From sequence record LR756508.1: a DNA stretch of 64,000 bases; one strand, given 5' to 3'. This document shows, piece by piece, positions 2,812-58,601 of this stretch; position 1 is the first letter of the stretch; every line of letters begins with the position of its first letter. The notes under the pieces are model-generated. The model saw nothing but the letters and a program-made list of their open reading frames with translations, did not search any database and had not been told where the DNA came from. The position numbers were made by a program, and so were the translations under genes.

Positions 2812-4743
2812 ATGGGCAAGACAATTGGAATTGACCTAGGAACTACGAACTCTGTTGTTTCTGTAATGGAAGGCGAGGAACCTGAGGTTATTGAAAATGA
2901 GGAAGGGTCTCGAACTACGCCGTCAGTCGTAGCATACAAAGACGACGGCGAGCGGCTTGTCGGCGACCCCGCTAAGCGACAAGCTATTACAAACCCTGAG
3001 AAGACAGTTTCTTCTATCAAACGCTTCATGGGAAGAGAGTATAATGAAGTGGATGAAGAAAGGGGTGAAGTGTCTTATGAAGTTGTGAAGGATGGCAATG
3101 GAATGGCGCGAGTAGAGGTAGATGGCGAACAGTATGCGCCGCAAGAAATTTCAAGTATGATCCTCCAGAAACTTAAGAAAACCGCCGAAGACCATCTCGG
3201 GCAGGAGGTCACGGATGCCGTAATTACCGTTCCTGCCTACTTTAACGAGGCCCAACGGAAAGCAACCAAAGAAGCAGGAGAAATTGCTGGTCTTAACGTA
3301 GAGCGAATCATAAACGAGCCGACCGCAGCTTCCCTAGCTTATGGTCTTGACGATAAGTCTGATCAAGTGGTTGCTGTATACGACTTAGGTGGTGGAACCT
3401 TTGACGTGTCAATCCTTGAGTTGGGCGACGACGTTTACGAGGTTCTCGCTACCTATGGCGATACTCAACTCGGGGGTGACAACTTTGATCAAGAGCTTAT
3501 TAATCACATGGCCGACGAGTTTGAAGCTAAGCACGGAATTGATCTTCAAGACGATCCTATGGCCCTGCAGCGGCTCCGAGAAGCCGCAGAGCAAGCAAAG
3601 ATCGAGCTTTCCAGCACCAAAACGACGAACGTCAATCTTCCATTTATCACGGCTACCGACAATGGTCCCGTTCATTTGGACATTGATATCACGAGAGCGG
3701 AGTTCGAAAATATGATCGGTGGCCTCGTAGAGGAGACCATTCCTCAGATGGAGAAAGCCATGAACGACGCCGAAGTTTCAAACTCCGACATTGATGAAGT
3801 AATTTTTGTTGGAGGCTCAACTAGAGTGCCTCTCGTTCAAGAGAAAGTTGAAGACTTTTTTGGGCAACAGGCAAATAAGTCCGTAAACCCTGATGAAGTT
3901 GTTTCTCTTGGAGCTGCTATTCAAGGAGGAGTTCTTTCTGGAGACGTTGATGACGTTCTTCTTTTGGATGTTACTCCTCTCGATCTTGGAATCGAAACTA
4001 TGGGTGGCGTGAAGACGACGCTTATTCCTGCCAACACTACTATTCCAACGCAGGAGACAGAAACATTTACTACCGCCGCAGATAACCAGCAGTCGGTGGA
4101 AGTTCACGTCCTGCAAGGAGATCGTGAAATGGCGAGAGACAACCGGACGTTAAGTAAGTTTCACCTGACTGGCATTCCTCCTGCTCCCCGAGGTACTCCG
4201 AAGATTGAGGTTTCGTTTGATATCGATGCCGATGGCATTCTCTCGGTAACGGCTGAAGACCAGGAGACTGGCAAAGAGCACTCAATTGAAGTCGAGGCTT
4301 CTAGTGGCTTGTCTGAAGATGAAATTGAAAAAATGAGGGAGGAAGCCGAGAAGCACGCCGAGGAAGACGAACGTCGAAAAGAGCGTGCCGATACGATCAA
4401 CGAAGCAACCTCACTTAGTTACAGCATTGGACAGGGACTTGATGAGTGGGGCGATCAAATCTCCGATGAAAAGAGGGAAGAAATCGAGTCTCTTAGAGAG
4501 GAGTTGGATGAAGCCCTTGAAACTGCCTCTGCAGATGAAGATATAAGTGAGGTCGAAAACACGATGGAAGACTTGCAGGAGGTCTACAAGTCCGTCGGTC
4601 AAGAAATCTATGGCCAGCAAGCCGCTGGTCAGCAGAGAGCTGCAGGGCCTCAAGCTGAAGCTGCTGGCCAAAGTGCCCAACAAGCAGGTCAAGAAGTAGA
4701 TGATGAAGACGTGACCGACGCCGACTATGAGGTAGTCGATTAA
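2812..4743 (+). CDS. dnaK: Hsp70 chaperone DnaK
   Basis: [37 protein letters not shown] motifs; full length. Confidence 0.98.
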
Positions 4744-5577: not shown

Positions 5578-5950
5578 TCTAGTTTTCGGTTTCATCATCG
5601 TGGGCGCTACCTATATTATTTTTCAATTCGATAGTGAGAGCTTGTCTTTAAGATTTGGAGTAAGTCTCTTTTTCTCCTTTATCGCTCTACTTTTTTGGGC
5701 TCTCATCTCTGGAACCATCGCCGTTAAAGGTGAAAAAGAACGTGTTTCTAGGTCTCAATACGAAATTCATCGGAGCCATTCTAAAGTGTTCTTTTCTTTG
5801 GAAGGTAAGAGGGACCCCATAACGAGATCCGATCATTATATTTACGAAAACGCAGGAGACACAACAAAAGTCTACATCACCAGAGAAAGGGGGTGGAATA
5901 GGTTTGGATACTTAATTAAAGAAGACATAGATTTTCAAACCAAAAAATAA
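5564..5950 (+). CDS. 2-TM membrane protein, paralog family copy 2
   Basis: YEI..VFF..YENAGDTTKV. Confidence 0.75.
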   Translation: MLIIDLVFGFIIVGATYIIFQFDSESLSLRFGVSLFFSFIALLFWALISGTIAVKGEKERVSRSQYEIHRSHSKVFFSLEGKRDPITRSDHYIYENAGDTTKVYITRERGWNRFGYLIKEDIDFQTKK

Positions 5951-5954
5951 AAAC

Positions 5955-6365
5955 ATGAGTTCTATTCCTATAGCATACTGGCTCCTTGTTGGAATTATAC
6001 TCTTCGTCGCAATTTTCTTCCAATACAGAATCATGAAAACTGGTGGGAGCAAAATTAAGATATTCTTTAAACTCTTTTTTAATGTCGGCTGCGCTATTTT
6101 GGCTTTAATGCTTGCCGGATTAGCAACTGGAAAAACTGTAAATACCGAGAAGATTGATCCCGAAAGGTATGAGGTAGTTAAAAAGAAAGAGTACGTCATA
6201 TTTGCGTTTCCCGATGAATTTGAGAAGCGAAACAAAAAAAGAAGCTACTTCATCTGGAAGCACGCCGAAGACACGAGTAAAGTCTGGTTTGAGGTCTCAA
6301 CATTCAAACCAACATACGGAAGTAGTTTCAAGATGAGCAAAAGTTTGGAAACAACAAAAGAATGA
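5955..6365 (+). CDS. 2-TM membrane protein, paralog family copy 3
   Basis: YEV..VIF..WKHAEDTSKV. Confidence 0.75.
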   Translation: MSSIPIAYWLLVGIILFVAIFFQYRIMKTGGSKIKIFFKLFFNVGCAILALMLAGLATGKTVNTEKIDPERYEVVKKKEYVIFAFPDEFEKRNKKRSYFIWKHAEDTSKVWFEVSTFKPTYGSSFKMSKSLETTKE

Positions 6366-6366
6366 T

Positions 6367-6774
6367 ATGAACCAACTACTATTTTTCGGCATTAATGTAG
6401 GATTAGCGTTATTCGTAGGGTTTTTTATTTACTTTGTTCTCATTCCAGTCTTTAAAGATGATACTGGCCTTGGAGTGCTGATTTCTCTTTTCTTGTTAAT
6501 CCCCATGACTGTTTCCTATGCTCTTCACGTCGATGGAACGAAAGAGGTAAAAAGAAATCTGATTCCTAAAGAAAAGTATCAAGTCGCCCGAACCAGCGAG
6601 TCAGTCGTTTTTGTATTGGAGGGAGAAAAACCAATAAGGTCAAATCGTGCTTTCGTATATAATAACGCCAAAGACACATCTAAAGTGAAACTATACCGAA
6701 TTAAAAAAATCAACTGGTTTAACTCTGTGAGGAACGTAAACATTAAAATTGAAACAGTAGAATCAGACTCTTAA
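6367..6774 (+). CDS. 2-TM membrane protein, paralog family copy 4
   Basis: YQV..VVF..YNNAKDTSKV. Confidence 0.75.
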   Translation: MNQLLFFGINVGLALFVGFFIYFVLIPVFKDDTGLGVLISLFLLIPMTVSYALHVDGTKEVKRNLIPKEKYQVARTSESVVFVLEGEKPIRSNRAFVYNNAKDTSKVKLYRIKKINWFNSVRNVNIKIETVESDS

Positions 6775-14156: not shown

Positions 14157-14227
14157 TGCTTGGTAGCTCATTCTGGTTGAGCGTCGGCTCCTAAAGCCGA
14201 AGGTAGGTTCAATCCCTAACCGAGCAT
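14157..14227 (+). tRNA. tRNA with CTA anticodon (amber suppressor candidate; alternatively aberrant Arg-CCT)
   Basis: Acceptor TGCTTGG/CCGAGCA, D arm GCTC/GAGC, anticodon stem TCGGC/GCCGA around TCCTAAA, T arm GTAGG-TTCAATC-CCTAA; 2-nt variable region. Confidence 0.6.
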
Positions 14228-14232
14228 CATAA

Positions 14233-14324
14233 AAGCTGCGTACAGCAACCATTACCCTGGTTTCGTTGGTTCGAATCCAACCCAAAAAGAGCGGTGAAGC
14301 AAAACACCTAAAAAGCCGCAGCTT
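14233..14324 (+). ncRNA. clamp cassette A (degenerate permuted tRNA-like)
   Basis: AAGCTGCG/CGCAGCTT stem, TACAGCAA, T arm GTTGG-TTCGAAT-CCAAC placed before a GGTG/CACC hairpin. Confidence 0.7.
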
Positions 14325-14530
14325 GATATTCATTTCTTTTAAATCATTTCTCAAAAAAAATGAAAATGCCTGCAGGTCCAAGTCCTAAAGAGGTCAAATA
14401 TTCCAAAAAGGCTAATAAATATCTATGTGAAGAAAAAGAAAGCAATTTAAACTCTGAACCTCTCAACTTTGTAGACCTGCAGCTCTTCACTGAACAATTG
14501 GAGATTTTGAACAAAAAATATAAATAGCTC

Positions 14531-16950: not shown

Positions 16951-16969
16951 TATATATTAATAGAAAGCA

Positions 16970-17023
16970 AGGCTGCTAACAGCAATGTATTGGATTCCTC
17001 TGTAAAAGGAAAAAATGCAGTCT
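16970..17023 (+). ncRNA. clamp cassette B (isolated Tyr-GTA anticodon stem-loop)
   Basis: AGGCTGC/GCAGTCT stem, TAACAGCAA, TTCCT-CTGTAAA-AGGAA. Confidence 0.75.
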
Positions 17024-17093
17024 GATGATCTTTCAGGTTATATTACTTTTTCTTAAGAATATTTCTATTTGTTTTTAAATATTGTAAGACTGA

Positions 17094-17209
17094 AAGCTAC
17101 CTGCAGCAATTCTCTTACCTCCTCGTAAAGGGAGAGGTTATGGGTTCGAGTCCCATCGCGCTGGCTTTTGGCGCGTAGCTCAATTGGTAGAGCGCTAACT
17201 GAGTAGCTT
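17094..17209 (+). ncRNA. clamp cassette C (circularly permuted tRNA, anticodon GTA or CGT)
   Basis: AAGCTAC/GTAGCTT stem; order is anticodon arm, T arm ATGGG-TTCGAGT-CCCAT, acceptor 3' CGCGCTG, linker, acceptor 5' TGGCGCG, D arm GCTC-AATTGGTA-GAGC. Confidence 0.85.
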
Positions 17210-17229
17210 GATGAGGTCTTTTATTTTTA

Positions 17230-17339
17230 AGGCTGCTAACAGCAGAACTTCTTATTATGGAAGCAGAAACACGTAGGTTCAAATCCTACCACTAGTGTGT
17301 GGCCGAGTCTGGTTAAGCATCTGCATAAAAATGCAGCCT
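17230..17339 (+). ncRNA. clamp cassette D (tRNA-Pro-like, opened at anticodon loop, 3-bp acceptor)
   Basis: AGGCTGC/GCAGCCT stem; TGGAA-GCAGA, T arm GTAGG-TTCAAAT-CCTAC, CAC-TAGT-GTG, D arm, then TCTGC which pairs with GCAGA. Confidence 0.8.
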
Positions 17340-17348
17340 GATATATTG

Positions 17349-17432
17349 TGGGTGAAGGAGTGGGACGACCCGCTCGATGACGTTTTCTACTGAGTTTTCT
17401 CGGGAGGACGTCATTCCGTAAGGATAAGCTCA
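17349..17432 (+). ncRNA. candidate four-way-junction structured RNA
   Basis: GAGTGGG/CCCGCTC, ATGACGT/ACGTCAT, TCC-GTAA-GGA, closing TGGGT/GCTCA. Confidence 0.4.
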
Positions 17433-17437
17433 TGAAA

Positions 17438-17512
17438 GCGGCAGTAGTTCAGTTTGATCAGAACACCGCGATGCCACTGCGGAAGTCGTGAGTTTAAATC
17501 TCGCCTGCCGCT
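17438..17512 (+). tRNA. tRNA-Gly(GCC), atypical D and T loops
   Basis: GCGGCAG/CTGCCGC acceptor, CCGCG-ATGCCAC-TGCGG, T loop TTTAAAT. Confidence 0.8.
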
Positions 17513-17684
17513 CTTTTCTTACCTATTAAAGACAAAACAACATGAAATTAAAGTTTAACATTCGTAAGCCAAATTTGAGAGGCACTGACGAGCCAAGAAA
17601 AATCGACAGGAAAAATGTAGTTGCTGCCGAGTCTTCTTCGGCTTGTAGTAGAAAGAAAAAGAAAAAAGAAGATTCAAAACAAAA

Positions 17685-17759
17685 GCGTCGGTAGTTCAAT
17701 TTGTAGAACATCTGATCTTTCCGATCAGAAGGTTGGAGGTTCAAATCCTCCCCGTCGCT
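17685..17759 (+). tRNA. Arg-type tRNA body with a 9-nt anticodon loop (identity undetermined)
   Basis: GCGTCGG/CCGTCGC, TCTGA-TCTTTCCGA-TCAGA, GGAGG-TTCAAAT-CCTCC. Confidence 0.6.
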
Positions 17760-17851
17760 CATTTGAATAGTTTTTGTAGCTGTTTATCAATAGTATTAAA
17801 AATAAGTTTTTTTGATATGGAAATTGATGTAAGGTAAAGGAAGATGGTTCC

Positions 17852-18259
17852 GTGGAGGCTAAGTCATCCTTCAAGCAACTTCTTAGTAGAGAGAAAAACA
17901 AGAGCCTGCTATCTGCAGGTTTGAGTCAAAACGAGCTTCCGTTCCATTGGAAAATGGTTGAACTTCCAAGTTTTCTTTATGATGGTGAGCCATACACGGC
18001 TAGAGCAACAAGAATTGATGTTAATGGAAGTCTTCTTGACGATTTCTTTAATGTCCTAAAAAAAGAGGTAGCCGAGGAAGATCTTAATAAGGAAGTTAGA
18101 GGTGTCTATAGAAGCGTCTTGGATAGCGTGTGGGATGAAGTGACTGATAATCTTTCTGAGATGCACAGCGAAGATGAAATGATTGGCTTCTACGAATTTG
18201 ATCTGGCTGACGTGGATGGACAAAAGATTCTACTTCTGCGGTATGCCGTGATCGATTAA
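17852..18259 (+). CDS. hypothetical protein
   Basis: 135-aa ORF. Confidence 0.65.
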   Translation: MEAKSSFKQLLSREKNKSLLSAGLSQNELPFHWKMVELPSFLYDGEPYTARATRIDVNGSLLDDFFNVLKKEVAEEDLNKEVRGVYRSVLDSVWDEVTDNLSEMHSEDEMIGFYEFDLADVDGQKILLLRYAVID

Positions 18260-18320
18260 ATTTTTCTTCATGGAACAGTATGTATATTCACACATTGAGT
18301 TAGAGTGACTTTGATGGGTA

Positions 18321-18380
18321 AAACTGCTAACAGCAACGCTGATTTTTTACCTTATCATTCACCAGGTAAAAAAGCAGTTT
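18321..18380 (+). ncRNA. clamp cassette E (single 10-bp hairpin)
   Basis: AAACTGC/GCAGTTT stem, TAACAGCAA, TTTTTTACCT-TATCATTCACC-AGGTAAAAAA. Confidence 0.75.
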
Positions 18381-18415
18381 GATGATCCCAATTTTTTTTA
18401 AACAAGTTTAACCTT

Positions 18416-18495
18416 GGAGATATGATCTAGTCTAGTCTAGGATGCGAGTTTGTCAAACTCGATGTCCCGAGTGCAAATCTCGGTGTCTCCGCCAT
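18416..18495 (+). tRNA. tRNA-Asp(GTC), encoded CCA
   Basis: GGAGATA/TGTCTCC, CGAGT-TTGTCAA-ACTCG, T loop TGCAAAT, ends GCCA. Confidence 0.8.
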
Positions 18496-18760
18496 ATTAT
18501 GCACTTTGATAAACTTCGGACTTGGCATGCGAGCGTGCTTAAACCGAGGCACGAGAGGCTTCCGTAGAAGCCTTAGTAGGTTTCCAGTAACCCAAAACGT
18601 AGAGCCCTTTTTGTTAGTATTGTCTTAGAGAGGCAAGCGGCAATGAGAGGAATTCCCATACTGGAATCCTCCGACTGCGTTCCGAAAGGCAGGCCCTCTC
18701 GAAGGAGTGGGCGTACCAGAGCCTCCAGGCAAGAAAGTCAAAAAGGGAAAACTGGAATAA

Positions 18761-18832
18761 GAGGCAGTAGTTTAGCTGGCAAAACGTTTGGATGCCATCC
18801 AGAAGTCGCTGGATCATTTCCAGCCTGCTGCT
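18761..18832 (+). tRNA. tRNA-Gly(GCC), second degenerate copy
   Basis: GAGGCAG/CTGCTGC, TTTGG-ATGCCAT-CCAGA, T loop ATCATTT. Confidence 0.6.
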
Positions 18833-19101
18833 CTTTTGATGAAGTAACAAAGTTTCTGCATTTTATGGCCTCTCCTCAAAATATACAAGAAGTATTTAAT
18901 GCTTCCAGCAAAATAGACAAGCAGCTTGAGGGCATACGGCCTTGTCGATCACACGCGATTCCACGGGGGGTTTCAGAGTCGGACCAGTTAGCGAACGATC
19001 AAGAAGAAAAATGCAAGTCGAAAAGTTCTGGAATGCATGCTGTCCTACGTAAGAGGCGGGAAGTTCCTGCAAAACTTCAAACAGTCGGGAAGTTTTAATA
19101 T

Positions 19102-19184
19102 CGCGGAGTAGAGCAGTCTGGTGTGCTCACTTGGTTCATGTCCAAGAGGTCGTCTTTTAAACGGTTCAAATCCTACCTCCGCTA
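19102..19184 (+). tRNA. initiator-type tRNA-Met(CAT) with an insertion in the T stem
   Basis: CGCGGAG start with C1 mismatch, CTTGG-TTCATGT-CCAAG, T stem GT[CTTTTAAAC]GG/CCTAC. Confidence 0.6.
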
Positions 19185-19198
19185 CACTTAAAAGCTTA

Positions 19199-19316
19199 AG
19201 GCTGCTCACAGCAAATCCTATATATTTTTTCCACATAAGGAAGAGATATGGGTTCGAGTCCCATCGGGCTGGAGTTTGGCGCGTAGCTTAACTGGTAAAG
19301 CTCTAATATGCAGCCT
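19199..19316 (+). ncRNA. clamp cassette F (circularly permuted tRNA, anticodon CAT)
   Basis: AGGCTGC/GCAGCCT stem; TTTTC-CACATAA-GGAAG, ATGGG-TTCGAGT-CCCAT, CGGGCTG-GAGTT-TGGCGCG, D arm GCTT-AACTGGTA-AAGC. Confidence 0.85.
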
Positions 19317-19322
19317 GTTTCT

Positions 19323-21931: not shown

Positions 21932-22015
21932 GTGGAGCATTGGCAAGTCTGGTCGAAGCCGCTAGGTCGTGGTCCTAGTAATCCTCATTCGTTGGTTCAA
22001 ATCCAACTGCTCCAC
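21932..22015 (+). tRNA. tRNA-His(GTG) with 12-nt variable loop
   Basis: G-1 plus TGGAGCA/TGCTCCA, C73, CTAGG-TCGTGGT-CCTAG. Confidence 0.85.
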
Positions 22016-22114
22016 CTTTAAAATTAAATCAAGACAACATACTAAATTGAATACACACCGACTAAACGCTTATATAAATGCACAATTAAAAAAGTTATAA
22101 ATAAAGCAAATTTG

Positions 22115-34859: not shown

Positions 34860-36833
34860 ATGAGTGAAGAATCCGATTCAGTAGTAGAAAATTTCGGTAG
34901 AAATCTTACTGAATTAGCTAAGAAGGGCGAACTTGATCCGGTTATTGGTCGAGAACAAGAGATCAAGAGAGTCTCGCAGGTTCTGGTTCGTAGGAAGAAG
35001 AATAATCCCGTCCTTATTGGGAGTCCTGGCGTTGGAAAGTCGGCAATAATCGAGGGTCTTGCAAAAAAAATTGTCCAAAGAGATACAAATCGCTCCCTTT
35101 TTGATGTTGAAATTGTAGAGTTAAATTTGACATCCCTTGTAGCAGGAACAAGATACCGAGGGCAGTTTGAAGACCGAATGAGAGCAGTTATCGATGAGCT
35201 TGAAAATGAAGAGGACAAGCTTCTTTTCATCGATGAACTTCATACGATTATGGGAACAGGCCAGGCGAGAGGTGGACTGGATGCGTCCAACATGTTAAAA
35301 CCTGCGCTCGCGGACGGAAGGCTTCAATGCATCGGTGCAACAACCTTGGAAGAATATCGGAATATTGAAGATAATGGTGCCCTAGAGAGGAGGTTTCAAA
35401 AGGTAGTTGTTGATCCATCCAGCGAGGAGGAAACTAAAAACATCTTACGAAATATTCGGCAATACTACGAAGACTTCCACAATGTAAAGTATAGCGATGA
35501 AATTATTGACCGAGCCGTCCAGCTTGCTGCAAGATATATTACAAACAGGTATTTTCCCGATAAGGCGGTCGATATCATCGATGAGGTAGGCTCTCGTGTA
35601 AATATTGAAAACATCGAGCCTCCTGAAAAACTTATTGAGATTGAAGAAAAATATGATGAACTTGAAGAAGAAAAACAGGAGGCCGTGTCTGAGCAGGAGT
35701 TTGAAGCTGCTGCTGACCTGCGAGATAAACAGGAGCAGCTTGAAAATCTCTATGAACAAGAAAAAGAAAACTGGAAAGAGGTAAGAAATGAAAACTACTA
35801 CGACGTAAAGGAAGATGATATTGCAGAAGTGGTTTCTATGATTACCGATATTCCAAAAGAAAAGATTTCTGCAGACACGAAAGATAAGGTTCTCGGGCTC
35901 GACAAGAGAATGAAAGAACGTGTAGTTGGACAGGATCGAGCTATCGAGACCGTGACAAGTGCCATGAAAAGAGCCACGAGCGGTATTAAAGACCCTGATC
36001 GCCCGATTGGCACTTTTCTTTTTCTGGGTCCCACCGGGGTGGGGAAAACTCTGAGCGCTAAAGTTCTTACCGAAGAGATCTTTGAATCTCAAAAGAATCT
36101 TGTTCGGATTGACATGAGTGAGTACCAGGAAAAGTTTGAATCTACAAAACTCATGGGATCTCCTCCTGGTTACGTTGGGCACGAAGAGGGTGGCGATCTT
36201 ACCGAAAAGGTTCGTAGAAATCCGTACTCGGTCGTTCTACTTGATGAAATTGAGAAAGCCCACCCTGATATTTTTAATACCCTCCTGCAAATCATGGACG
36301 ATGGGATCATGACCGATGGAATGGGCCGAGAAGTTGACTTTACGAACACAATCCTCATCATGACCTCTAATGTTGGAAGTGAAGAGCTTGTATCAAGCGG
36401 TTCGGACATCGGGTTTAGTCCAGGAGATTCAGGTGACCCACTTTCTTATGAAACTATCAAGACAAAAGTTGAAGACAAGCTCGGTGACACATTTAAACCT
36501 GAGTTCCTGAATAGGTTAGATGACGTTGTAATCTTCAATGCTCTTAAAAAAGATCACATTAGAGAGATCATTGACATCGAGCTTGAAGACCTTCGAGATC
36601 GCCTAGATCTCCAAGAGATTACTTTGAACATCACTGATGGAGCTAAAGACGTATTGATTGAAAAAGGATATGACATGGAGTATGGAGCTAGGCCCCTCAA
36701 AAGGACGCTCCGAAAGCAAATTGAAGAGCCACTTTCTGATATGATTATCTCTGAAGATGTCGATGAAGGGGACGAAGTTCGAGTTAGAAAGAGAAGAAAC
36801 GAAATGGAAGTTGAAATTGATGTCAATCCTTGA
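34860..36833 (+). CDS. ClpC/ClpE-type Hsp100 ATPase lacking the N-domain
   Basis: Two AAA+ modules (GSPGVGKS; GPTGVGKT), UVR-like QEFEAAADLRD, GSPPGYVG, YGARPL. Confidence 0.9.
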   Translation: MSEESDSVVENFGRNLTELAKKGELDPVIGREQEIKRVSQVLVRRKKNNPVLIGSPGVGKSAIIEGLAKKIVQRDTNRSLFDVEIVELNLTSLVAGTRYRGQFEDRMRAVIDELENEEDKLLFIDELHTIMGTGQARGGLDASNMLKPALADGRLQCIGATTLEEYRNIEDNGALERRFQKVVVDPSSEEETKNILRNIRQYYEDFHNVKYSDEIIDRAVQLAARYITNRYFPDKAVDIIDEVGSRVNIENIEPPEKLIEIEEKYDELEEEKQEAVSEQEFEAAADLRDKQEQLENLYEQEKENWKEVRNENYYDVKEDDIAEVVSMITDIPKEKISADTKDKVLGLDKRMKERVVGQDRAIETVTSAMKRATSGIKDPDRPIGTFLFLGPTGVGKTLSAKVLTEEIFESQKNLVRIDMSEYQEKFESTKLMGSPPGYVGHEEGGDLTEKVRRNPYSVVLLDEIEKAHPDIFNTLLQIMDDGIMTDGMGREVDFTNTILIMTSNVGSEELVSSGSDIGFSPGDSGDPLSYETIKTKVEDKLGDTFKPEFLNRLDDVVIFNALKKDHIREIIDIELEDLRDRLDLQEITLNITDGAKDVLIEKGYDMEYGARPLKRTLRKQIEEPLSDMIISEDVDEGDEVRVRKRRNEMEVEIDVNP

Positions 36834-37129
36834 TGGCTAACCAATATTCTCTGAATATTAAAAAACGAGAAAGAGTCTACATTTTGAAAAGAAACTCTCT
36901 TCTGTTTCATAAGATCTCCGAAATTTTAAAAAATCGCACAGAAGGAAAGTTAAATCCCATGCTTAGATCAAGCGTAAACAGGGTATCGAGATCAATATTT
37001 AGTCTCGTTAAAAGATTCAAGCATGGCTCTAAACTTTTCCAGAACGAAAATGCAGATTTAAAGACCTTAAACCAAAATTTTGAGAGCATAAAAGATTATC
37101 CGAAGCGGTATAACATTCCATTCTATTAG
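36830..37129 (+). CDS. hypothetical protein
   Basis: 99-aa ORF. Confidence 0.5.
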   Translation: MMANQYSLNIKKRERVYILKRNSLLFHKISEILKNRTEGKLNPMLRSSVNRVSRSIFSLVKRFKHGSKLFQNENADLKTLNQNFESIKDYPKRYNIPFY

Positions 37130-37159
37130 TATTTCTAACTTAGTTTTAATAATTACATT

Positions 37160-37381
37160 ATGTCAAGAAAAAGATTTCAATACGGTCAAAGCGTCTACGT
37201 TCATTATAAAGGCGCTGGCTACGAAGGAGAGTATAAAGGCGTTGATACCTTTGAGCGAAACAAAAAGCATACTGTAGAAATTCCAAGTATGCATAGGGAG
37301 CTTTCTTTTGCAGATAACGATATTTTCGGTTCTTTAGAAGAACTTGAAGAAGCTCATCCCCAGGTAAGCTCCAACCTTTAG
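37160..37381 (+). CDS. hypothetical protein
   Basis: 73-aa ORF. Confidence 0.6.
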   Translation: MSRKRFQYGQSVYVHYKGAGYEGEYKGVDTFERNKKHTVEIPSMHRELSFADNDIFGSLEELEEAHPQVSSNL

Positions 37382-37477
37382 CTTTTCTTAACACGAGAGG
37401 CTGAAACTTTCTACTTTTCATCTCATTGAATGGGTGAATGAAAGATTGAATCCTAACCGATAACAAACCAAAAACCA

Positions 37478-38488
37478 ATGAAAGAATCGATTAACAAGGA
37501 GAAGAGTGCCATCACCATCACCGAAGAAGCAGAGGAGGCCGGAGAGTCTGTTCATCTCCCTGAAAACTTGAGTCAAATTCGCAGGTTTATTCGAAACGAG
37601 GCTCCTGACCTTCTTCCCGATGGCTTGAAGATGAAAGAGTCGAAGTGGAAGACGTTGATTCGTTCCATTCTTCGGGGGAAGAACATCTTGTTTACAGGGC
37701 ACTCTGGCTGCGGGAAAACCATCGCTGCCATGTCTGCAGTTCGCGCCTTGAAGCGAAAGTTTTTTTACTTTAACCTTGGCGCAACCCAGCGACCGCGAAC
37801 AAGCCTGATCGGAACTCGCGAAGTTGAAGATGGATCGACATACTTTTCTCCTTCCGTTTTCGTGGAAGCCATTCAAACTGAAGGGGCAGTAATCCTTCTC
37901 GATGAGCTTTCACGGGCGCACCCTGAAGCTATTAACATTCTCCTTACTCCTCTCGATCCGAAGCAGCGCTACCTGCGACTTGACGAGTCCGACGAGGAGG
38001 ATACTGTAAAGGTTCACGATAGCGTTTCCTTTGTCGGAACTGCCAACATTGGAAACGAGTATACTGCGGCACGGCGGATCGACAGGGCCATGTGGGATCG
38101 GTTCACGGTTATTGAAATGGATCTTCTCGGGCGAGAAGAAGAAAAAGATCTTATCCTGGAAACCTACCCCGAGTTGAAAGAAGAAACAGCCGCCAAGCTC
38201 GCTCGGATTGCGGAGCAAACGCGAGATCAAGCTCAAAGTAGCAGTCCCGAGGTTGAAACAATTATTTCTACTCGACAAAACCTGGAAGCCGCTGAAATGA
38301 TTCGGGACGGATTGTCGCTTGAAGAATCCGCTGAGGTAGCTTACTACCCAAACTACGATAAGGAAGGTGGAGTCGATTCTCCCCGAAACTACGTGAAGAA
38401 AGTTGTGCAGCGGGAAATTGATGATGAAAGCGACGATGAGCTATTCTCAAGTCGAGACATCGAGGAAGCTCCGCGCCGCAATAATTAA
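37478..38488 (+). CDS. MoxR-family (CbbQ/NirQ-like) AAA+ ATPase
   Basis: GHSGCGKT, ILLDELSRA, TANIG, AMWDRF. Confidence 0.88.
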   Translation: MKESINKEKSAITITEEAEEAGESVHLPENLSQIRRFIRNEAPDLLPDGLKMKESKWKTLIRSILRGKNILFTGHSGCGKTIAAMSAVRALKRKFFYFNLGATQRPRTSLIGTREVEDGSTYFSPSVFVEAIQTEGAVILLDELSRAHPEAINILLTPLDPKQRYLRLDESDEEDTVKVHDSVSFVGTANIGNEYTAARRIDRAMWDRFTVIEMDLLGREEEKDLILETYPELKEETAAKLARIAEQTRDQAQSSSPEVETIISTRQNLEAAEMIRDGLSLEESAEVAYYPNYDKEGGVDSPRNYVKKVVQREIDDESDDELFSSRDIEEAPRRNN

Positions 38489-38508
38489 ATCACAAACCAT
38501 TAGCGTTT

Positions 38509-40407
38509 ATGAAGCCTACCACTAAAAAATCCCAAAACTACTCCGATTGGTGGCTCGATGACATTACCAAGCGGAGCGTCAGAAAAGCCAGAAATGGCAA
38601 GAGTCAGTCGGAAAAAGACCTTGCCGCGCTTGCTTCCGTCAAGAGGTCCATAGCACAGTTTGTCCACATTCTTACGGGAAAGAGGCTGCGCGTGAAGTTC
38701 AAGGAAGAAGGCAAGGAGTCTTTCACCGACGGCGAGACCGTGGTTGTTTCTTCGGACATCGGTCCAGAGACTTACGATCAAACTGTCGGAATTGCCCTCC
38801 ACGAGGGCTCTCACATTGTGAAAACGGACTTCTACATCTTCAAAAACATTGAAGATTATATTCCAAGTCACATCGAAGACTTGGCTGACAAGAAGTTCGG
38901 AGAAACTGAGTTTTTGGAGCAAGTTCTCCATAAAATTCTAAATTACGTAGAAGACAGGCGGATCGATAATTGGGTGTTTTCTACCTCGCCTGGATACAAA
39001 GGCTACTACCATTCGATGTATGAAGCTCATTGGCACAACGAGAAGATTACCGAGCGCCTCAAGTCCGACGACTTTCGCGATGAGACGATGCAGTCCTATA
39101 TGTTTCGCCTCATTAACCTCACGAACGATGCAGGCGATCTGGATGCGTTGAACGGGCTCCGCGAGATCCATGATAGAATTGATCTCGATAACATCGCTCG
39201 TCTCCAAAGCACCGAAGATGTGTTGGAAGTCTCTCAAGACATCTTGGAGATTATTATCGAGAACGTCAATGACATTGAGTTCGAGGAAGGGGGCGACGTG
39301 AAGTTTGTTCCTGGCGAAGGCGATGGAGATGGCGATCCCATCGATTGGGACGAGCTTTCTGAAGAAGAAAAAGAAGCTCTTAAAGATGCCATTGAAGACC
39401 AGATGGACTTTTTGGATGGTAACATTGATAAAGAGCCAATTGATCCTGAAGACGCTGAAGAGCTTGAAGCTTTGGAAGACGCTGGCGTCTCTACGCACGA
39501 GGTGGGTGAGGGAACCGGCAATCCTCATGGCATTGATTGTGTAGTTATCGATAAGCTTACCGAGAGGCTTGTTAACAAGAGCAAGTTCCCGATCCTAAAA
39601 ACCTATGAGGTCGATAGGTCCAAAGAAGCCGTAAATCAAGGCGTTGTTCTTGGAAGGAAGCTCGGCAAAAAGCTCAAAGTTCGAGACACAAAACGAAATA
39701 CGAAATTTTCCCGCAGAAAAAGTGGACGATTGGATCAAGCTCTTCTCTCGGAGGTAGGCCACACCGAGCGCCTTTTCTATGAGGAAATTATTGATGAGTA
39801 CGATGACGCATTCGTTCATATAAGCGTGGACGCAAGTGGCTCGATGTCAAATGACAAGTGGAGCGAAGCCATGAAAACGTGCGTGGCCGTAGCTAAGGCT
39901 TGCTCTATGATTGGAAACGTTCGGGTCCAGATTTCTTTTCGGTCAACAACGAGCGCTGGATTTTCTTCGGGGGAAACCAAGCCTCTTATTTTGATGGCTT
40001 ACGATTCCGATGAAAGTTCGTTTAATCACGTCAAGAAGTACTTTCCGAACATTAATTCTGGAGGCACGACTCCTGCTGGCCTTACATTTGAGGCCATTCA
40101 AGAGAAAATTCTTCTTGTGAAAGACGACGAAGATGGGTATTTCGTAAACCTGTCTGATGGTAGGCCAAACTTTAGCGCAGATGATTTCCAATACGGATCT
40201 GAAAACGGGGCTGCTCACACTAGAAAACAGGTCCGGAAAATCAAAAAGAAAGGAATTGAAGTCGTCGCTTACTTCATTTCGTCAGGAAGTAGCAGCGTTG
40301 ACTCCGCATTTAGCAGGATGTATGGCCCTGACGACTACTACATCGATCCATCAAATATCACCCAAGTCTCGAAAACTCTAAACAAAAAGTTCCTTAAAGA
40401 AAAGTGA
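38509..40407 (+). CDS. VWA-domain protein with N-terminal HExxH domain (MoxR partner)
   Basis: ALHEGSH, NYVEDRRI, VDASGSM MIDAS, GGTTP, LSDG. Confidence 0.85.
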   Translation: MKPTTKKSQNYSDWWLDDITKRSVRKARNGKSQSEKDLAALASVKRSIAQFVHILTGKRLRVKFKEEGKESFTDGETVVVSSDIGPETYDQTVGIALHEGSHIVKTDFYIFKNIEDYIPSHIEDLADKKFGETEFLEQVLHKILNYVEDRRIDNWVFSTSPGYKGYYHSMYEAHWHNEKITERLKSDDFRDETMQSYMFRLINLTNDAGDLDALNGLREIHDRIDLDNIARLQSTEDVLEVSQDILEIIIENVNDIEFEEGGDVKFVPGEGDGDGDPIDWDELSEEEKEALKDAIEDQMDFLDGNIDKEPIDPEDAEELEALEDAGVSTHEVGEGTGNPHGIDCVVIDKLTERLVNKSKFPILKTYEVDRSKEAVNQGVVLGRKLGKKLKVRDTKRNTKFSRRKSGRLDQALLSEVGHTERLFYEEIIDEYDDAFVHISVDASGSMSNDKWSEAMKTCVAVAKACSMIGNVRVQISFRSTTSAGFSSGETKPLILMAYDSDESSFNHVKKYFPNINSGGTTPAGLTFEAIQEKILLVKDDEDGYFVNLSDGRPNFSADDFQYGSENGAAHTRKQVRKIKKKGIEVVAYFISSGSSSVDSAFSRMYGPDDYYIDPSNITQVSKTLNKKFLKEK

Positions 40408-51724: not shown

Positions 51725-52876
51725 ATGGAAAAGCCTTTGGAAATTCAAACTTTTTTGAGAGGTGAGGGCTCTATGAGTGAACTTAAGAAAGAGCCCTACA
51801 ATTTGAAGATTAATACCGATGACAAAGGAAGACGCATTCTTTTCAAATACAACCAGATCAAGTCAGATCTAAGTCTTAAAATTACGAGAGAAGCAAGAGG
51901 ATTAATTCTTGATCGAAAAAACAACTGGAAAGTGGTAAGTTTTCCTTTCAAAAAGTTCTTTAACTGGGAAGAAGACTTTGCTGTTGATATAGACTGGGAA
52001 ACTGCTAAAGTGTATGACAAGTTGGATGGAACTTGCTCAATCATTTATTTATATGATGGCGAGTGGATAATGCATACTCTTGGAACCGTCGAGGGCGGCG
52101 GACCTGTCCACACCGACGAGTTAATCTCACTTCCTTTTGATGGAACCTTTTCCGATCTTTTCTTTCACGCCTGGAAGAAAGAGTATGGAGAAGAAAAATT
52201 TGAGTCTTTAAACAAAGACTACATCTACGTTTTTGAGCTCATGACTCCATACAACATCGTTGTAAAGGAACACAGCGATTATAAAATCTCTCTACTTGCC
52301 GTAAGAGATCGTAAGACATTAAATGAACTGCCAGTTGAACAATTTTCCGACCAGTTTAAAACTCCAAGAACCTATAGTTTTTCGGATTTGACTCCCGAAA
52401 AATTAAAGAAAACACTGGAGGATTTTCCTCCTGATGAAGAAGGGTACGTGGTCCGGGACGATAACTTTAACAGGATAAAGTTAAAGAATCCTGGCTACGT
52501 AATGAAGCATAGAATGAAAAATAATGCCGTTAATAGAAAACACGGCATTTTAGAAATTGTTCTTAACGAGGAAGAAGATGACTTTATATCCTCTTTTCCC
52601 GGCCTAAAAAAACAGATCGAAGGCGTCAAAGATGACCTGGATGAACTGATTGGTTTTTTGGAGCAGAAGTATCAAAACTTTAATGGTGAAAGCGTAGACC
52701 CACAGGACAGTCAAGAACGAAAAGAGTTTGCCCTGAAAGTTCAAGATCAAATTCCATCAAGTCTGCAAGGGTATATGTTTGCCAGGCTTTCAACCGATGA
52801 TAGCTTCGAAGAAATACTAAAAGACTCTAACGTTTCAAATGTAGCCACCTCTTTAAATAATTTCAACGATAGGTAG
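51725..52876 (+). CDS. T4 Rnl1-like RNA ligase
   Basis: REARG, FPFKKFFN, motif I KLDG, FELM, EGYV, IKLKN. Confidence 0.85.
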   Translation: MEKPLEIQTFLRGEGSMSELKKEPYNLKINTDDKGRRILFKYNQIKSDLSLKITREARGLILDRKNNWKVVSFPFKKFFNWEEDFAVDIDWETAKVYDKLDGTCSIIYLYDGEWIMHTLGTVEGGGPVHTDELISLPFDGTFSDLFFHAWKKEYGEEKFESLNKDYIYVFELMTPYNIVVKEHSDYKISLLAVRDRKTLNELPVEQFSDQFKTPRTYSFSDLTPEKLKKTLEDFPPDEEGYVVRDDNFNRIKLKNPGYVMKHRMKNNAVNRKHGILEIVLNEEEDDFISSFPGLKKQIEGVKDDLDELIGFLEQKYQNFNGESVDPQDSQERKEFALKVQDQIPSSLQGYMFARLSTDDSFEEILKDSNVSNVATSLNNFNDR

Positions 52877-53236: not shown

Positions 53237-54460
53237 ATGTACACAAAAACGTTTACAGAGGTTGCAAAAGAAAATGGTTTTGGTGACATTAATGAAACTG
53301 AAGACGAGAAGTTTTCTACTGTAAAAGATTATGTAGTAAATGTTTATAAGACCCATGAGGAAGTTGGCTTTGTGGACAACCTGGACCATCCACATACATC
53401 TGATATTTCTGATGTCAACCACTCGACATATTTAAAGGAAGAGGCAGTTCAAGATGTGACTGTCTGCTATACGCTCTGGCAAAATCCTCTCTACGTCAAA
53501 CTTCTTTATCTTTCTTTTTTATCTCAGATTCTATACAGTGACATTTTGAATGTCAAAAAATTTGTGATCGTTACTGATTACAAACTTGAACCACTCGTTT
53601 GGGATGTCTTTCGTCCATTTGCACAGGATCATTCAGGAAACTTCGAGTTAGAAGTGAAAGCAGTTGACAGGCAAAGAGTGGTCTGGTCTGATGTTGCTCC
53701 AAACGTAAGAATGCCTGTAAGATTGAATAAATATGTCGTTTCCACGTTTGATGACTTAAGAAAAACTGATCTACTTGTTTTATCTGACTGCGAAAGCTTT
53801 ATCTTTGGAGAAAAAAGTCAGATTTATAGTCAACTACATTCGCAGTATTCGGAATCAGATAATTTTCCAGTTCTCGGCTGCGAAGAAAATCACAACAGCT
53901 CTTCCGTCTTCCTGCAGCGGCGAGAAGATCTGGCTAATATGATGCACGACAATGAAGAGTATGTCAACTGGTGTGCAAAAAGATTGGAGGTATCTAAAGA
54001 TAATTTTGTAGATAAAGTAGTAAAAAGAAACAATTGGTTTTTAACCTGCTGGTTCGTATTTGATAATGAAAAATATAAGCTCAATGATTCTCACTGGCAA
54101 GATTACGTTGAATGGTCAAACCTTTACTCGATGTACTGCGACGAGTCCATTTATTTAACTTATGGATGGTGCGCAGAAGATTACACAGTTAAAGACGTTA
54201 AAGTTATTAACGGGTTAGAATTTATTCATTCTCCTTACTGCGAGTCTTTTTTTGAACAAGACGAGTATGATAAAACAGGAATTGTCCATCCGCTGCACGG
54301 AAAATGGGCTGAAGATTTCTGGGTTCATGATTTCTATGACTCGATTCAAGATGGATTCGAGGCGGAGTTGAAACAAGCTATGAGTGAAAAAGTAAGCTTA
54401 AGGGAGTTACTGCCTCAATATAAAGATAGCTACTATACTGAGCCAATTCAAAACGAATGA
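53237..54460 (+). CDS. GT-A-like protein (family with 49844 and 55451)
   Basis: KLLYLSFLSQILYSDI, LSDCE, CDE, HP. Confidence 0.5.
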   Translation: MYTKTFTEVAKENGFGDINETEDEKFSTVKDYVVNVYKTHEEVGFVDNLDHPHTSDISDVNHSTYLKEEAVQDVTVCYTLWQNPLYVKLLYLSFLSQILYSDILNVKKFVIVTDYKLEPLVWDVFRPFAQDHSGNFELEVKAVDRQRVVWSDVAPNVRMPVRLNKYVVSTFDDLRKTDLLVLSDCESFIFGEKSQIYSQLHSQYSESDNFPVLGCEENHNSSSVFLQRREDLANMMHDNEEYVNWCAKRLEVSKDNFVDKVVKRNNWFLTCWFVFDNEKYKLNDSHWQDYVEWSNLYSMYCDESIYLTYGWCAEDYTVKDVKVINGLEFIHSPYCESFFEQDEYDKTGIVHPLHGKWAEDFWVHDFYDSIQDGFEAELKQAMSEKVSLRELLPQYKDSYYTEPIQNE

Positions 54461-55449
54461 TCACTCTTGCCAACGAGTTTTCTCGCGCTATCGATAAAAT
54501 GCGAGATACACCTCAACCTAAACAATATCATCCCGAGGTTTGGGTGTGGAATCACGAATCTCTCGTTTTTTATAGCATTCTAAACAATACTTCTCACCTC
54601 TCTAATACTCAACAAAAAGAACTCTTGTGGACCGCTCTTTTCCACGATCTGGGGAAAATTGATAAAACCTGGTATAGAGAAAAGAAGGAACGTTACGTCT
54701 CTTACGGTCACGAAAAAGCCGCACTTCCTTATTATGATGCCACAAAAGAAGCACTTGTTGATAAAGACCTTCGACCTGAGGTAATCCGTTTTCTTATAAG
54801 ACAGCATATGAAGCCGAAATTTATAGATAGGATGAATGAAGGCACGGTCGAAAAGTTAAAAAAAGAAGCGAACAATATTAGTGAAGACGTTTGGAATCTC
54901 CTCATGGAATTTGCCGAACACGACGATGCCTCCAAGCTTTACAAGAATTCTGACAAAACCGATAGATACGAAGCTCAATGGCTTTTTCATAACTTCTGTG
55001 AAAAAGCCATAGAAAAAATCAATTTAACTTATTCTAACGAAAAGGACAGTTTCACTGGTGAACTGTTTATTCTGAGAGGTGCATCTGGATCCGGAAAATC
55101 AACGGTTGCTCAGCTTCTTGAAAATAATGGAGCCTATCAAATTTCTGCTGATCAGTTTTTCATAAGAGAGGACGGTAAGTATCGTTATGACGGGAGCAAA
55201 ATTTCAGAAGCTCACGACTATTCCAAACGTAGAACTGAAGATGGAATGGTTGCTGAGAGAGAAACCATTGCCGTTCATAACACCTTTACCGAAGACTGGC
55301 AGATGATCTATTATTTTTATCTGGCAGCAAAGTATAACTACAGGGTTCATACCTTACTGGTTGAAAACAGGCATGAAAGCGATACTATACATAATGTTCC
55401 CGAAAACAAAATTGAAGATCAGAGGGAAGAAATGGAACTGAAACTTTAG
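54457..55449 (+). CDS. HD-domain phosphoesterase fused to a polynucleotide kinase (HD-Pnk-like)
   Basis: YHPE..H, LFHDLGK, GHE, HM; LRGASGSGKS, SADQF, VHNTF. Confidence 0.82.
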   Translation: MITLANEFSRAIDKMRDTPQPKQYHPEVWVWNHESLVFYSILNNTSHLSNTQQKELLWTALFHDLGKIDKTWYREKKERYVSYGHEKAALPYYDATKEALVDKDLRPEVIRFLIRQHMKPKFIDRMNEGTVEKLKKEANNISEDVWNLLMEFAEHDDASKLYKNSDKTDRYEAQWLFHNFCEKAIEKINLTYSNEKDSFTGELFILRGASGSGKSTVAQLLENNGAYQISADQFFIREDGKYRYDGSKISEAHDYSKRRTEDGMVAERETIAVHNTFTEDWQMIYYFYLAAKYNYRVHTLLVENRHESDTIHNVPENKIEDQREEMELKL

Positions 55450-58361: not shown

Positions 58362-58588
58362 CTCGCAAGGAGAACGAAACTGTTATTGTCCATGATTATG
58401 CAAAAGAAAAGGTTTTTTTCTACACGACACGAAAAGGTGAACGAAGAAATCTACTAAAAAGAATTGGAGAAGAAAACGTAAAAATCAACACGAAAAGAAA
58501 CCGCTCGGGAGATGAAATTGCCTGGGAAATTGAAATTGATATGGAGTATTGTAGAGATGCATACATGGTAACAAAAGTTATTAATTAG
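58358..58588 (+). CDS. hypothetical protein
   Basis: 76-aa ORF. Confidence 0.6.
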   Translation: MTRKENETVIVHDYAKEKVFFYTTRKGERRNLLKRIGEENVKINTKRNRSGDEIAWEIEIDMEYCRDAYMVTKVIN

Positions 58589-58601
58589 ACATAAAGATGT
58601 T

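Follow-up and report, generated by a model that had tools for sequence, protein, structure and literature searches.

Two permuted tRNA-like cassettes of a phage tRNA array belong to a large family of clamped small RNAs and are most likely tRNA mimics of the Y RNA type

The final 64 kb of sequence record LR756508.1 (484,177 base pairs (bp), unannotated), referred to below as the window and free of N runs, carry a phage tRNA array in which 11 ordinary tRNAs were called by ARAGORN and nine by Rfam, all on the plus strand and with a CUA suppressor among them. Two related elements of this array, cassettes C and F (Table 1), are called as a linear tRNA neither by ARAGORN nor by the Rfam tRNA model RF00005, and they form the subject of this work; a spurious Rfam tRNA match of 25.4 bits takes in C's 5′ half together with the T arm of another cassette, D. 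A preliminary description made from the letters alone had presented C and F as paralogous, circularly permuted tRNA genes, and all the elements that it listed are present. Their bodies are near-identical (88% over the cores of 60 nucleotides (nt), with the same T arm), the weak acceptor ends U1-G72 and G2-U71 can be seen in the sequence, and the tRNA anatomy is indeed permuted, with the break between positions 26 and 27. Both D arms carry A14 and G18G19, and the acceptor of F has a G-G mismatch at 5-68. The segments at the anticodon-arm position differ between the two cassettes as described, but they are not canonical anticodon arms. C has at this place a hairpin of 8 bp and a 5-nt loop, F one of 9-11 bp and a 6-nt loop; both are separated by 0-2 nt from the T arm, and U33 is missing even when a 7-nt loop is forced. 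A bulge-helix-bulge motif had been reported as absent, and in fact the outer ends form a continuous helix of 6-8 bp with nine unpaired nucleotides on one side only and without paired bulges of 3 nt. This terminal helix, closing each of the two cassettes, had been overlooked.

In C and F the 5′ strand of the terminal helix is followed by two bases and then by (A/G)CAGCAA, and such ends are common to six units of the window, namely C, F and four more. We call this module the clamp: a helix of 6-8 bp joining the ends, followed by an unpaired (U)N(A/U)CAGCAA, with an A-rich run ahead of the 3′ strand and a short U/G-rich tail; whatever it encloses is called the payload. The pattern CTGCNNRCAGCAR has five matches in the window against 0.05 expected, and the clamp helices compensate from unit to unit (GGCUGC/GCAGCC, AGCUAC/GUAGCU, AACUGC/GCAGUU, AGCUGCG/CGCAGCU). 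The cassette at 14.2 kb begins 3-4 nt past the suppressor tRNA(CUA), the clamp of F is separated by 6 nt from tRNA-Cys (19323), and the hairpin of cassette A resembles the anticodon stem-loop of tRNA-Tyr. Cassette D is matched by the covariance model R1, introduced below, at 49.9 bits (expectation value (E-value) 5e-8) and by nhmmer at an E-value of 1e-6; D, A and the 14.2-kb unit are all absent from the R1 seed. A seventh, short cassette of LR756508.1 lies at 71.2 kb, outside the window, and a weak R1 match was seen at 61825-61984 within it.

Table 1. Positions of the six cassettes in the window and of the parts of cassettes C and F
Feature	Position	Strand	Description
Cassette at 14.2 kb	14231-14326	+	clamp AGCUGCG/CGCAGCU, ACAGCAA; T arm only; R1 36.1 bits, E-value 3.5e-5
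Cassette A	16968-17025	+	clamp and 5-bp hairpin with 7-nt loop CUGUAAA; R1 25.0 bits
Cassette C, full unit	17092-17211	+	clamp and permuted tRNA-like body; R1 90.4 bits (C in seed)
C, clamp helix P1, 5′ strand AAGCUAC	17094-17100	+	read from sequence; partner GUAGCUU 17203-17209
C, clamp motif GCAGCAA	17103-17109	+	family consensus (A/U)CAGCAA
C, hairpin at anticodon-arm position	17117-17138	+	RNAfold: 8 bp, bulged A, 5-nt loop GUAAA
C, T arm ATGGG-TTCGAGT-CCCAT	17140-17156	+	read from sequence; consensus helix 2
C, closed acceptor hairpin CGCGCUG-GCUUU-UGGCGCG	17157-17175	+	7 bp, two of them G-U; consensus helix 3
C, acceptor parts	17157-17163; 17164-17168; 17169-17175		3′ strand CGCGCTG; loop GCTTT; 5′ strand TGGCGCG
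C, U8-A9, D arm GCUC-AAUUGGUA-GAGC and N26	17176-17194	+	consensus helix 4
C, D arm as DNA, GCTC-AATTGGTA-GAGC	17178-17193		preceded by TA, then G-CTAA
C, clamp helix P1, 3′ strand GTAGCTT	17203-17209	+	read from sequence; then tail GAUGAGG
Cassette D	17228-17341	+	clamp GGCUGC/GCAGCC, ACAGCAG; T arm, D arm, vestigial acceptor hairpin
Cassette E	18320-18381	+	clamp AAACUGC/GCAGUUU, ACAGCAA; 10-bp hairpin
Cassette F, full unit	19197-19318	+	clamp and permuted tRNA-like body; R1 88.2 bits (F in seed)
F, clamp helix P1	19199-19205; 19310-19316	+	AGGCTGC with GCAGCCT
F, clamp motif ACAGCAA	19208-19214	+
F, hairpin	19224-19247	+	RNAfold: 9-11 bp (two more bp can form), 6-nt loop ACAUAA
F, T arm	19248-19264	+	identical to that of C
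F, acceptor hairpin	19265-19283	+	CGGGCTG 19265-19271, GAGTT, TGGCGCG 19277-19283
F, U-A and D arm GCTT-AACTGGTA-AAGC	19284-19301	+	D arm 19286-19301; then T-CTAA

Scans of IMG/VR with the exact 14-mer and with AT-rich patterns returned chance matches only, and the exact 37-nt core of C and F had no match there. Later pattern scans of the same database found three contigs with identical units between tRNA genes, on the tRNA strand, the helix variants of which include GACUGC/GCAGUC, GAGUAGU/ACUACUC and GGUUACU/AGUAACC. A family was collected with a pattern combining CAGCAA with the T loop and the D loop, resulting in at least 118 IMG/VR loci and, from these, at least 118 distinct clamped units, in 82 of which the acceptor hairpin is closed and 6 bp or longer. 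The fixation of CAGCAA in all 118 tRNA-like members follows from its being part of the search pattern; the preferences in the flanking positions are free of this selection, and the motif is also found in cassettes of three loci (L147, L148 and L049) reached through other patterns. The model R1 gave 126 matches at E-values of at most 1e-5 in 100 IMG/VR loci and 40 matches at E-values of at most 1e-3 in 100 loci of bacterial and archaeal genomes or metagenome-assembled genomes (MAGs), among them loci of Clostridia, Lachnospiraceae, Prevotellaceae, Saccharibacteria and Chitinophagaceae, one on a chromosome of Flavobacterium and one in a Promethearchaeota MAG. When all window sequences are kept out of the profiles, these still recover C at full length with nhmmer E-values of 3.6e-17 and 6.3e-16, and F at full length with 1.8e-14 and 5.5e-14; both therefore belong to a large conserved RNA family. 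Its units are wedged among phage tRNA arrays, on the tRNA strand. In addition to the tRNA-like members there are about 130 short units of 50-70 nt (229 register matches against about 17 expected), many of them composed of a 5-bp stem and a C-U-NNN-A-A loop, a look-alike of an anticodon stem-loop. A literature search found no description of these RNAs.

Among single loci, the gaps in the tRNA array of Escherichia phage garuso (MN850566.1) hold four unannotated cassettes (5716-5781, 5882-5940, 6338-6405 and 6423-6552 of locus L521, corresponding to 60016-60081, 60182-60240, 60638-60705 and 60723-60852 of the record); the tRNA-like member at 60723-60852 scores 79.7 bits with R1 (E-value 1e-14), the other three being short cassettes found by the scanner. 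The member in the Promethearchaeota MAG (SDNL01000006.1; 1120-1243 of locus L403) scores 57.3 bits and has a CAU anticodon-like loop; its contig, which also carries a DUF2828-like open reading frame (ORF) and is binned as an Asgard archaeon, may be an archaeal virus or a binning error.

The fold of the family was examined on an alignment of 49 units, C and F included, for which RNAalifold gave a consensus of a 7-bp clamp, a 5-bp T arm, a 6-bp acceptor hairpin and a 4-bp D arm. All four helices covary, with compensatory changes in 20 of the 22 consensus pairs, a proportion of paired cells of 95.6% against 63% in shuffles, and a covariation score of 0.871 against 0.228 in shuffles and 0.09-0.18 in slid registers. 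Compensation reaches 7/7 pairs in the clamp and 6/6 in the acceptor, but in these two helices pairing was itself a criterion for admitting rows to the alignment, and their pairing statistics are inflated by it; the search pattern likewise included the T loop. The T stem, the D stem (where only the loop word TGGTA was selected) and the leave-out tests are unaffected by this selection. A 6-bp clamp test was passed by 30-45% of decoy strands and was thus too permissive, so that the covariance model and 7-bp criteria were used.

Other foldings of the ends were also considered. A local hairpin GCUG-CUAA-CAGC in place of the clamp is refuted by the variants AGCUAC/GUAGCU, GAGUAGU/ACUACUC and GGUUACU/AGUAACC, and a pseudoknot between CAGCAA and the 3′ tail would need a sterically implausible loop of zero length, the tail itself being variable. 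Only in C do the flanks beyond the clamp pair as well (AAGACU with AGGUCUU; 17086-17100 with 17203-17220), leaving GAA opposite UGAUG in an arrangement reminiscent of a kink-turn or a box C/D element (CUGA...UGAUGA). As a motif of the family, a kink-turn or box C/D element was rejected, the CUGA/UGAUGA with flanking pairs occurring in C only and the SNORD matches being weak chance ones.

At the level of the family, the tRNA origin is clear. A canonical anticodon arm, defined as a 5-bp stem with a 7-nt loop bearing U33 and R37 and a variable loop of 4-5 nt in exact tRNA register, is present in 25-28 of 75 non-redundant members, against 5.3 on average and 12 at most in shuffles; the variable loop of these members is often NGGUC. 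The permutation point is 26/27 throughout. In one subfamily a constant body with the stem UCUUU/AAAGA displays, within CU-NNN-AA, the triplets GAA, ACG, AUG, GCA, GUA and GGA, which echoes the impression, first gained from C and F, of the anticodon as a swappable part.

In regard to known RNAs, YrlA (RF02553) was the sole Rfam family to match C and F, with 43.8 bits (E-value 1.9e-7) and 27.5 bits, respectively, both below the gathering score of 69; the same model matches nine further family members at 28-49 bits. YrlA RNAs mimic tRNA, are encoded less than 4 kb from Ro60 on the same strand and are also found in mycobacteriophages (PMC4201824). Bacterial and mycobacteriophage YrlA RNAs order the T arm, the closed acceptor and the D arm as C and F do (PMC4201824), so that the remark of the preliminary description that no phage example is known does not hold for this topology. 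C and F share with the YrlA tRNA-like domain these three elements in a multiloop closed by a stem, and the family as a whole shares the end-joining stem, the multiloop order, U8, A14, G18G19, the T loop, the occurrence in phages and the position on the same strand near a gene of the Ro60 type.

Several features set the family apart from YrlA. The Ro60-binding stem GNCGAA(N0-1)G was not found in C and F, where a variable helix is followed by an unpaired (A/U/G)CAGCAA, and cmscan sets ACAGCAAAU against acggCgaAU without a pairing partner; the basal module of the family is thus a plain helix of 6-8 bp with an unpaired (A/U)CAGCAA, in contrast to the bulged helix of YrlA. Between the clamp and the T arm many members have one more hairpin, which is often a complete anticodon arm, tiny payloads unrelated to tRNA occur on the same clamp, and several units per genome are located inside tRNA arrays. 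Unlike YrlA, which goes with TROVE, the family is accompanied by a protein with DUF2828 and DUF7788, whose likeness to Ro60 is visible by structure only. No same-strand Pfam TROVE gene was found within about 4 kb of C and F in the window, and the family-level analogue of the YrlA neighbour rule holds with the DUF2828-type gene, which is itself outside Pfam TROVE. A BLAST search of phages with the YrlA consensus matched only junctions of neighbouring tRNAs. One such match, in Mycobacterium phage Kahlid (5001-5054 of locus L121) and its relatives, joins a T-arm-like stretch to an annotated tRNA-Trp; these actinophage junctions may represent an unannotated tRNA-like element or just tightly packed tRNAs.

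The accompanying gene emerged when ORFs around 71 cassette loci were clustered. The dominant neighbour, in 27 of the 71 loci, encodes a protein of about 470 amino acids (aa) that combines PF11443 (DUF2828) with PF25043 (DUF7788) and carries a vWA-type DxSGSM motif. All 27 genes share their strand with the nearest cassette, which is less than 4 kb away in 23 loci and less than 300 nt away in 12, its usual position being 90-180 nt upstream of the gene. A profile search detected the gene in 44 of 118 cassette loci and in only one of 265 background viral loci. Among the genome and MAG loci it was present in 15 of 120, and 14 of these were among the 100 loci searched with R1, with an RNA match in 14/14. 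In garuso the homologue (gp97), annotated as 'vWFA protein', lies at 58262-59677 with the tRNA array next downstream.

A sequence profile of the DUF2828 alignment did not reach Ro60 in a search of the PDB. However, the five top PDB matches of the AlphaFold model (mean confidence score pLDDT 77) are all Ro60/TROVE structures, among them phiLo Ro60 (E-value 2e-8, TM score 0.54-0.55), D. radiodurans Rsr and human Ro60; as judged from this model, the protein is Ro60-like, with a TROVE ring and a vWA domain. The label of the corresponding PHROG 850 is 'RNA-binding protein', its mycobacteriophage homologues are annotated as 'Ro-like RNA binding protein', and DUF2828/PHROG 850 is present in 711 isolated phage records. 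One homologue, Bas63 gp130 of a Felixounavirus related to garuso, was described as Ro60-like by structure, located directly upstream of a tRNA array and able to counter the Ppl defence, and its authors suggested that 'some tRNA genes' might be Y RNAs (10.1101/2024.10.10.617714). The best structural match is itself a phage protein with this fold: Ro60 of Thermus phage phiLo binds two Y-like RNAs encoded just upstream of it and the host PNPase (PMC12135203), and the complex was proposed as a means of escape from host defence (PMC12135203; PDB 9KOP, 9L5Y). The phiLo RNAs Yrl1 and Yrl2, however, were defined by a CGAA motif within a stem-bulge-stem, with no mention of a likeness to tRNA, and the identity between phiLo Ro60 and the DUF2828 protein is about 16-17%.

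The 64-kb window holds no TROVE or DUF2828 gene. The sole Ro-like gene of this phage lies at about 85.2-86.8 kb of LR756508.1 on the plus strand (36184-37760 of locus L513; about 85184-86760 of the record), and the gene just upstream of it looks like an HD-domain hydrolase.

We consider it likely that C and F are members of a large phage family of small RNAs acting like YrlA-type Y RNAs, in which a clamp and a tRNA-mimicking payload serve together with a Ro-like partner, probably in counter-defence. Most likely, C and F are Y RNA-type tRNA mimics and not working tRNAs: with a closed acceptor and a non-canonical anticodon hairpin, neither is expected to be charged or to decode, and maturation into decoding tRNAs is unlikely. 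The cassettes would be co-transcribed with the tRNAs and set free as RNase P and enzymes of 3′ processing cleave the tRNAs next to them, as suggested by the short distances separating F and the 14.2-kb unit from the adjacent tRNAs. The clamp would be the putative binding site of the Ro-like protein, and the payload of C and F would be a tRNA body with its acceptor closed by a short loop and its chain opened between the D and anticodon arms. Such a payload could engage a partner that recognizes tRNA, be it a tRNA-directed host enzyme (a nuclease, or one for modification or processing) or an exonuclease, for instance PNPase, and this partner might then be tethered to the Ro-like ring or sequestered. 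The likely pay-off would be counter-defence or RNA quality control and surveillance during infection; the homologous Bas63 gp130 is reported to counter Ppl. The mimics that keep anticodon loops suggest an imitation of specific tRNAs.

The RNAs are thus of a known kind, the Y RNA-like tRNA mimic, and what is new is the handle, the partner from another Ro branch and the wide unannotated spread. Two odd sequences lead in this way to hundreds of unannotated structured RNAs in phages of many bacterial phyla, FelixO1-like coliphages included, and the cassettes in the Felixounavirus tRNA array of garuso offer a tractable system in E. coli K-12. A very common phage protein, usually labelled hypothetical, would gain a concrete RNA partner, and the principle of Ro60 and Y RNA would be found to apply in a second branch of proteins, where the RNA handle is another one. 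In addition, tRNA annotation pipelines overlook these genes, and gaps in phage tRNA arrays deserve re-examination.

Several observations weigh against a Y RNA-like role. The YrlA scores of C and F remain under the gathering score, the clamp has no GNCGAA(N)G and its motif is unpaired and not set inside a bulged helix, and part of the pairing statistics is inflated by the selection of rows mentioned above. The anticodon arm is perfect in a third of the members, which would be needless in a mere scaffold. About 60% of the cassette loci have no Ro-like gene in their flanks, although this absence is weakly informative because the flanks extend over only a few kb. The Ro-like gene of LR756508.1 is located about 335 kb upstream of C along the linear record (about 130 kb if the ends of the record are joined) and is divided between two overlapping frames encoding pieces of 164 aa (DUF2828) and 365 aa (DUF2828 and DUF7788; each scanned apart), being otherwise intact. 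The split may reflect an error or indel of the assembly or a programmed shift, or the gene may have turned into a pseudogene recently.

The same absence of a Ro-like gene from over half of the cassette loci, and its distant and possibly broken copy in this phage, could also indicate that the RNAs act as lone decoys, the clamp being a shield against exonucleases and the body or anticodon loop soaking up a tRNA-cleaving defence nuclease or a tRNA-modifying enzyme. Many short units with C-U-NNN-A-A loops (CUGUAAA, CUGCUAA, CUUUUAA, CUGUUAA) would fit such a role. We nevertheless regard it as improbable, since an invariant unpaired CAGCAA would be needless for the protection of ends, the flanks covered are too short to give the missing gene much weight, and the enrichment of the gene near the cassettes (44/118 against 1/265) and its same-strand position (27/27) favour a protein partner.

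A different function for the ends would be that of processing punctuation, with the clamp and motif acting as a self-cleaving ribozyme or a nuclease site that parts the tRNA array and the payloads being tRNA debris. P1 followed by ACAGCA recalls the start of the CPEB3 ribozyme. The units lie tightly between tRNAs, in many cases 3-12 nt from their ends, and theta ribozymes resembling that of hepatitis delta virus (HDV) are known beside phage tRNAs (PMC10879173). Yet no Rfam ribozyme family was matched at E-values of at most 5-10, no downstream complement of an HDV-type P2 was found in 18 curated units, and the linkage to the Ro-like protein would be left unexplained. The strong covariation shows that the payload helices are under selection, in disagreement with debris, and we attribute a quite low probability to this explanation. 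Among the single ribozyme candidates, a theta ribozyme was rejected on the same missing P2 and Rfam match. The hammerhead fell likewise, its core CUGAUGA being present past the clamp in A only and not kept in C, D, E and F (CUGAUAU, UUGAUGA and CUGUUUC occur), again with no Rfam match, and the likeness to twister is limited to 'UAACA'.

Circularly permuted tRNA genes are found in Cyanidioschyzon merolae, green algae and Thermofilum, where the splicing endonuclease cuts a bulge-helix-bulge. In C and F, as in these genes, the 3′ part of the tRNA precedes the 5′ part, a short linker joins the acceptor ends and a helix unites the outer ends; the topology of C and F is exactly that of a 26/27-permuted tRNA. 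As true permuted genes, they would be cut at the clamp and the end of the D arm ligated to the start of the anticodon arm, whereupon the acceptor loop of the resulting circle would be opened by RNase P and 3′ trimming, and CCA added. The ligation would fall to a phage Rnl1-type ligase with a kinase/phosphatase, or to the host RtcB. An Rnl1-family RNA ligase (51725-52876) and an HD+AAA_33 kinase-like protein (54457-55449) are encoded in the window, about 33-35 kb downstream of the cassettes, and look like an RNA end-healing and sealing set; other recurrent neighbours of cassettes are also of RNA end-healing types (AAA_33 kinases, metallophosphoesterases and a dual-specificity phosphatase). We know of no bacterial or phage enzyme for the cut itself. 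M. smegmatis YrlA, with an acceptor of 7 bp, is indeed cleaved by RNase P and has CCA added (PMC4201824).

The re-permutation check put forward with the preliminary description turned out as that description predicted, with ARAGORN calling a tRNA for C and F as a circle or after re-permutation, with most of the junction variants, and for 53 of 70 re-permuted family members. Still, 47 of the 70 are called after a shuffle of the anticodon segment, and the isotype of C shifts with the junction chosen from Asp to Thr, Tyr or Phe; hence this check does not discriminate. The algal and archaeal genes yield charged, decoding tRNAs, whereas C and F have no U33 and no 7-nt loop that could be used for decoding. 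There is no bulge-helix-bulge in the family, and its outer helix bears a conserved protein-type motif, with the breakpoint fixed at 26/27. The acceptor is closed, CCA is not encoded in most members, and few acceptor loops begin with it. The clamp also carries hairpins that could never become tRNAs (A, E and about 130 short units), one body with varying triplets is hard to square with synthetase identity, and the RNAs accompany the gene of a Ro60-like RNA-binding protein and no splicing enzyme. Processing into functional tRNAs, together with the ligation that it requires, is hence very improbable for C and F; it would be possible for the members whose canonical arm is in register (25-28/75). 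The observation made in the preliminary description is confirmed, its topology was right, and its function was probably wrong.

That the cassettes are decaying tRNA fragments left without function by recombination in the array can be practically dismissed: D and the 14.2-kb unit do resemble partial tRNA bodies and the F acceptor is mismatched, but the copies number in the hundreds, spread over contigs that are unrelated, and all helices show compensatory changes; the motif is invariant, the order and spacing of the parts are preserved, and the covariation contradicts decay, with the leave-out searches speaking against an alignment artefact of selection.

The clamp itself has a further counterpart, in the Class I RNAs of Dictyostelia. 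Their Rfam model RF01414 has the consensus GaUcuC-CUUACAGCAA-...AAAAA...-GagAuC-UG, and it matches cassette A at 19.6 bits and no fewer than 13 other phage units at 22.6-30.8 bits, the one at 30.8 bits with an E-value of 4.5e-4 in a search of 331 nt. None of these scores reaches the gathering score of 41.5. Class I RNAs are defined by a stem, a motif and a variable body and were reported as unique to Dictyostelia, with no link to Ro or Y RNA considered (PMC7919456). Their 11-nt motif (CCUUACAGCAA; T3, C6, C9, A10 and A11 near-invariant) is found next to the 5′ strand in the phage as well. All six window units have the stem followed by NN-(A/G)CAGCAA, with C6, C9, A10 and A11 present, and T3 occurs in A, C, D, E and F (TA, CT, TA, TA, TC) and is missing at 14.2 kb (GT). 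The likeness comprises a short end-joining stem, an unpaired ..UUACAGCAA directly past its 5′ strand, an A-rich 3′ side, a 3′ end in ...UG, a variable body and the size of the short phage units: the Class I range of 42-65 nt, with a body that is unstructured or forms a small hairpin, fits A (about 54 nt) and E (about 58-60 nt). In contrast, C and F, with about 115-120 nt and a tRNA body, are twice as large. Class I genes have a DUSE promoter about 60 nt upstream, whereas the phage units sit within tRNA arrays, and the known Class I partner is Rnp1A, a protein with an RNA recognition motif, whereas the phage family is linked to the Ro-like gene.

It is possible, although rather doubtful, that the clamp (terminal helix, unpaired UUACAGCAA and 3′ UG) is the recognition module of the DUF2828 Ro60 branch everywhere, and that Class I RNAs are its eukaryotic Y-type counterparts by descent or transfer. 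Within the same scenario, the phage clamp would display tRNA bodies or anticodon stem-loops to tRNA-directed defence enzymes, as a programmable decoy or tether behind the anti-Ppl activity of Bas63 gp130. If this were true, the abundant Class I RNAs, 20-year-old orphans of unknown function, would gain a testable lead through the common handle.

The window contains several other features. The suppressor tRNA at 14157-14228 (anticodon CUA, labelled 'Pyl' by ARAGORN, 43.5 bits with the Rfam tRNA model) is an amber suppressor, and the phage may therefore read UAG as sense in some genes; recoding of TAG lengthens the ORFs of the window modestly. Both copies of tRNA-Gly(GCC) are preceded by a GC-richer leader with GAAGGAGUGGG(A/C)CG (17345-17437 and 18495-18760), a candidate for a structured leader that is conserved, or for a small ribozyme, with no Rfam match at E-values of at most 5. 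Oversized or irregular tRNAs of the array lie at 19102-19185, 21933-22016 and 18416-18494, examples being an 84-nt 'tRNA-Met' whose T arm is preceded by an insertion (31.2 bits in Rfam) and an 84-nt tRNA-His called by ARAGORN only. Outside the array, genes for an Hsp70 (DnaK-like), a ClpB-like double AAA+ protein and a MoxR-type AAA+ ATPase were found at 2812-4743, 34860-36833 and 37478-40407, the last followed by an ORF of 632 aa with no Pfam match. Finally, a gene of the TnpB/IS605 OrfB type (OrfB_IS605, Cas12f-like TNB and helix-turn-helix domains) is located at 62698-63885, 1.5 kb downstream of tRNA-Leu/tRNA-Asn.

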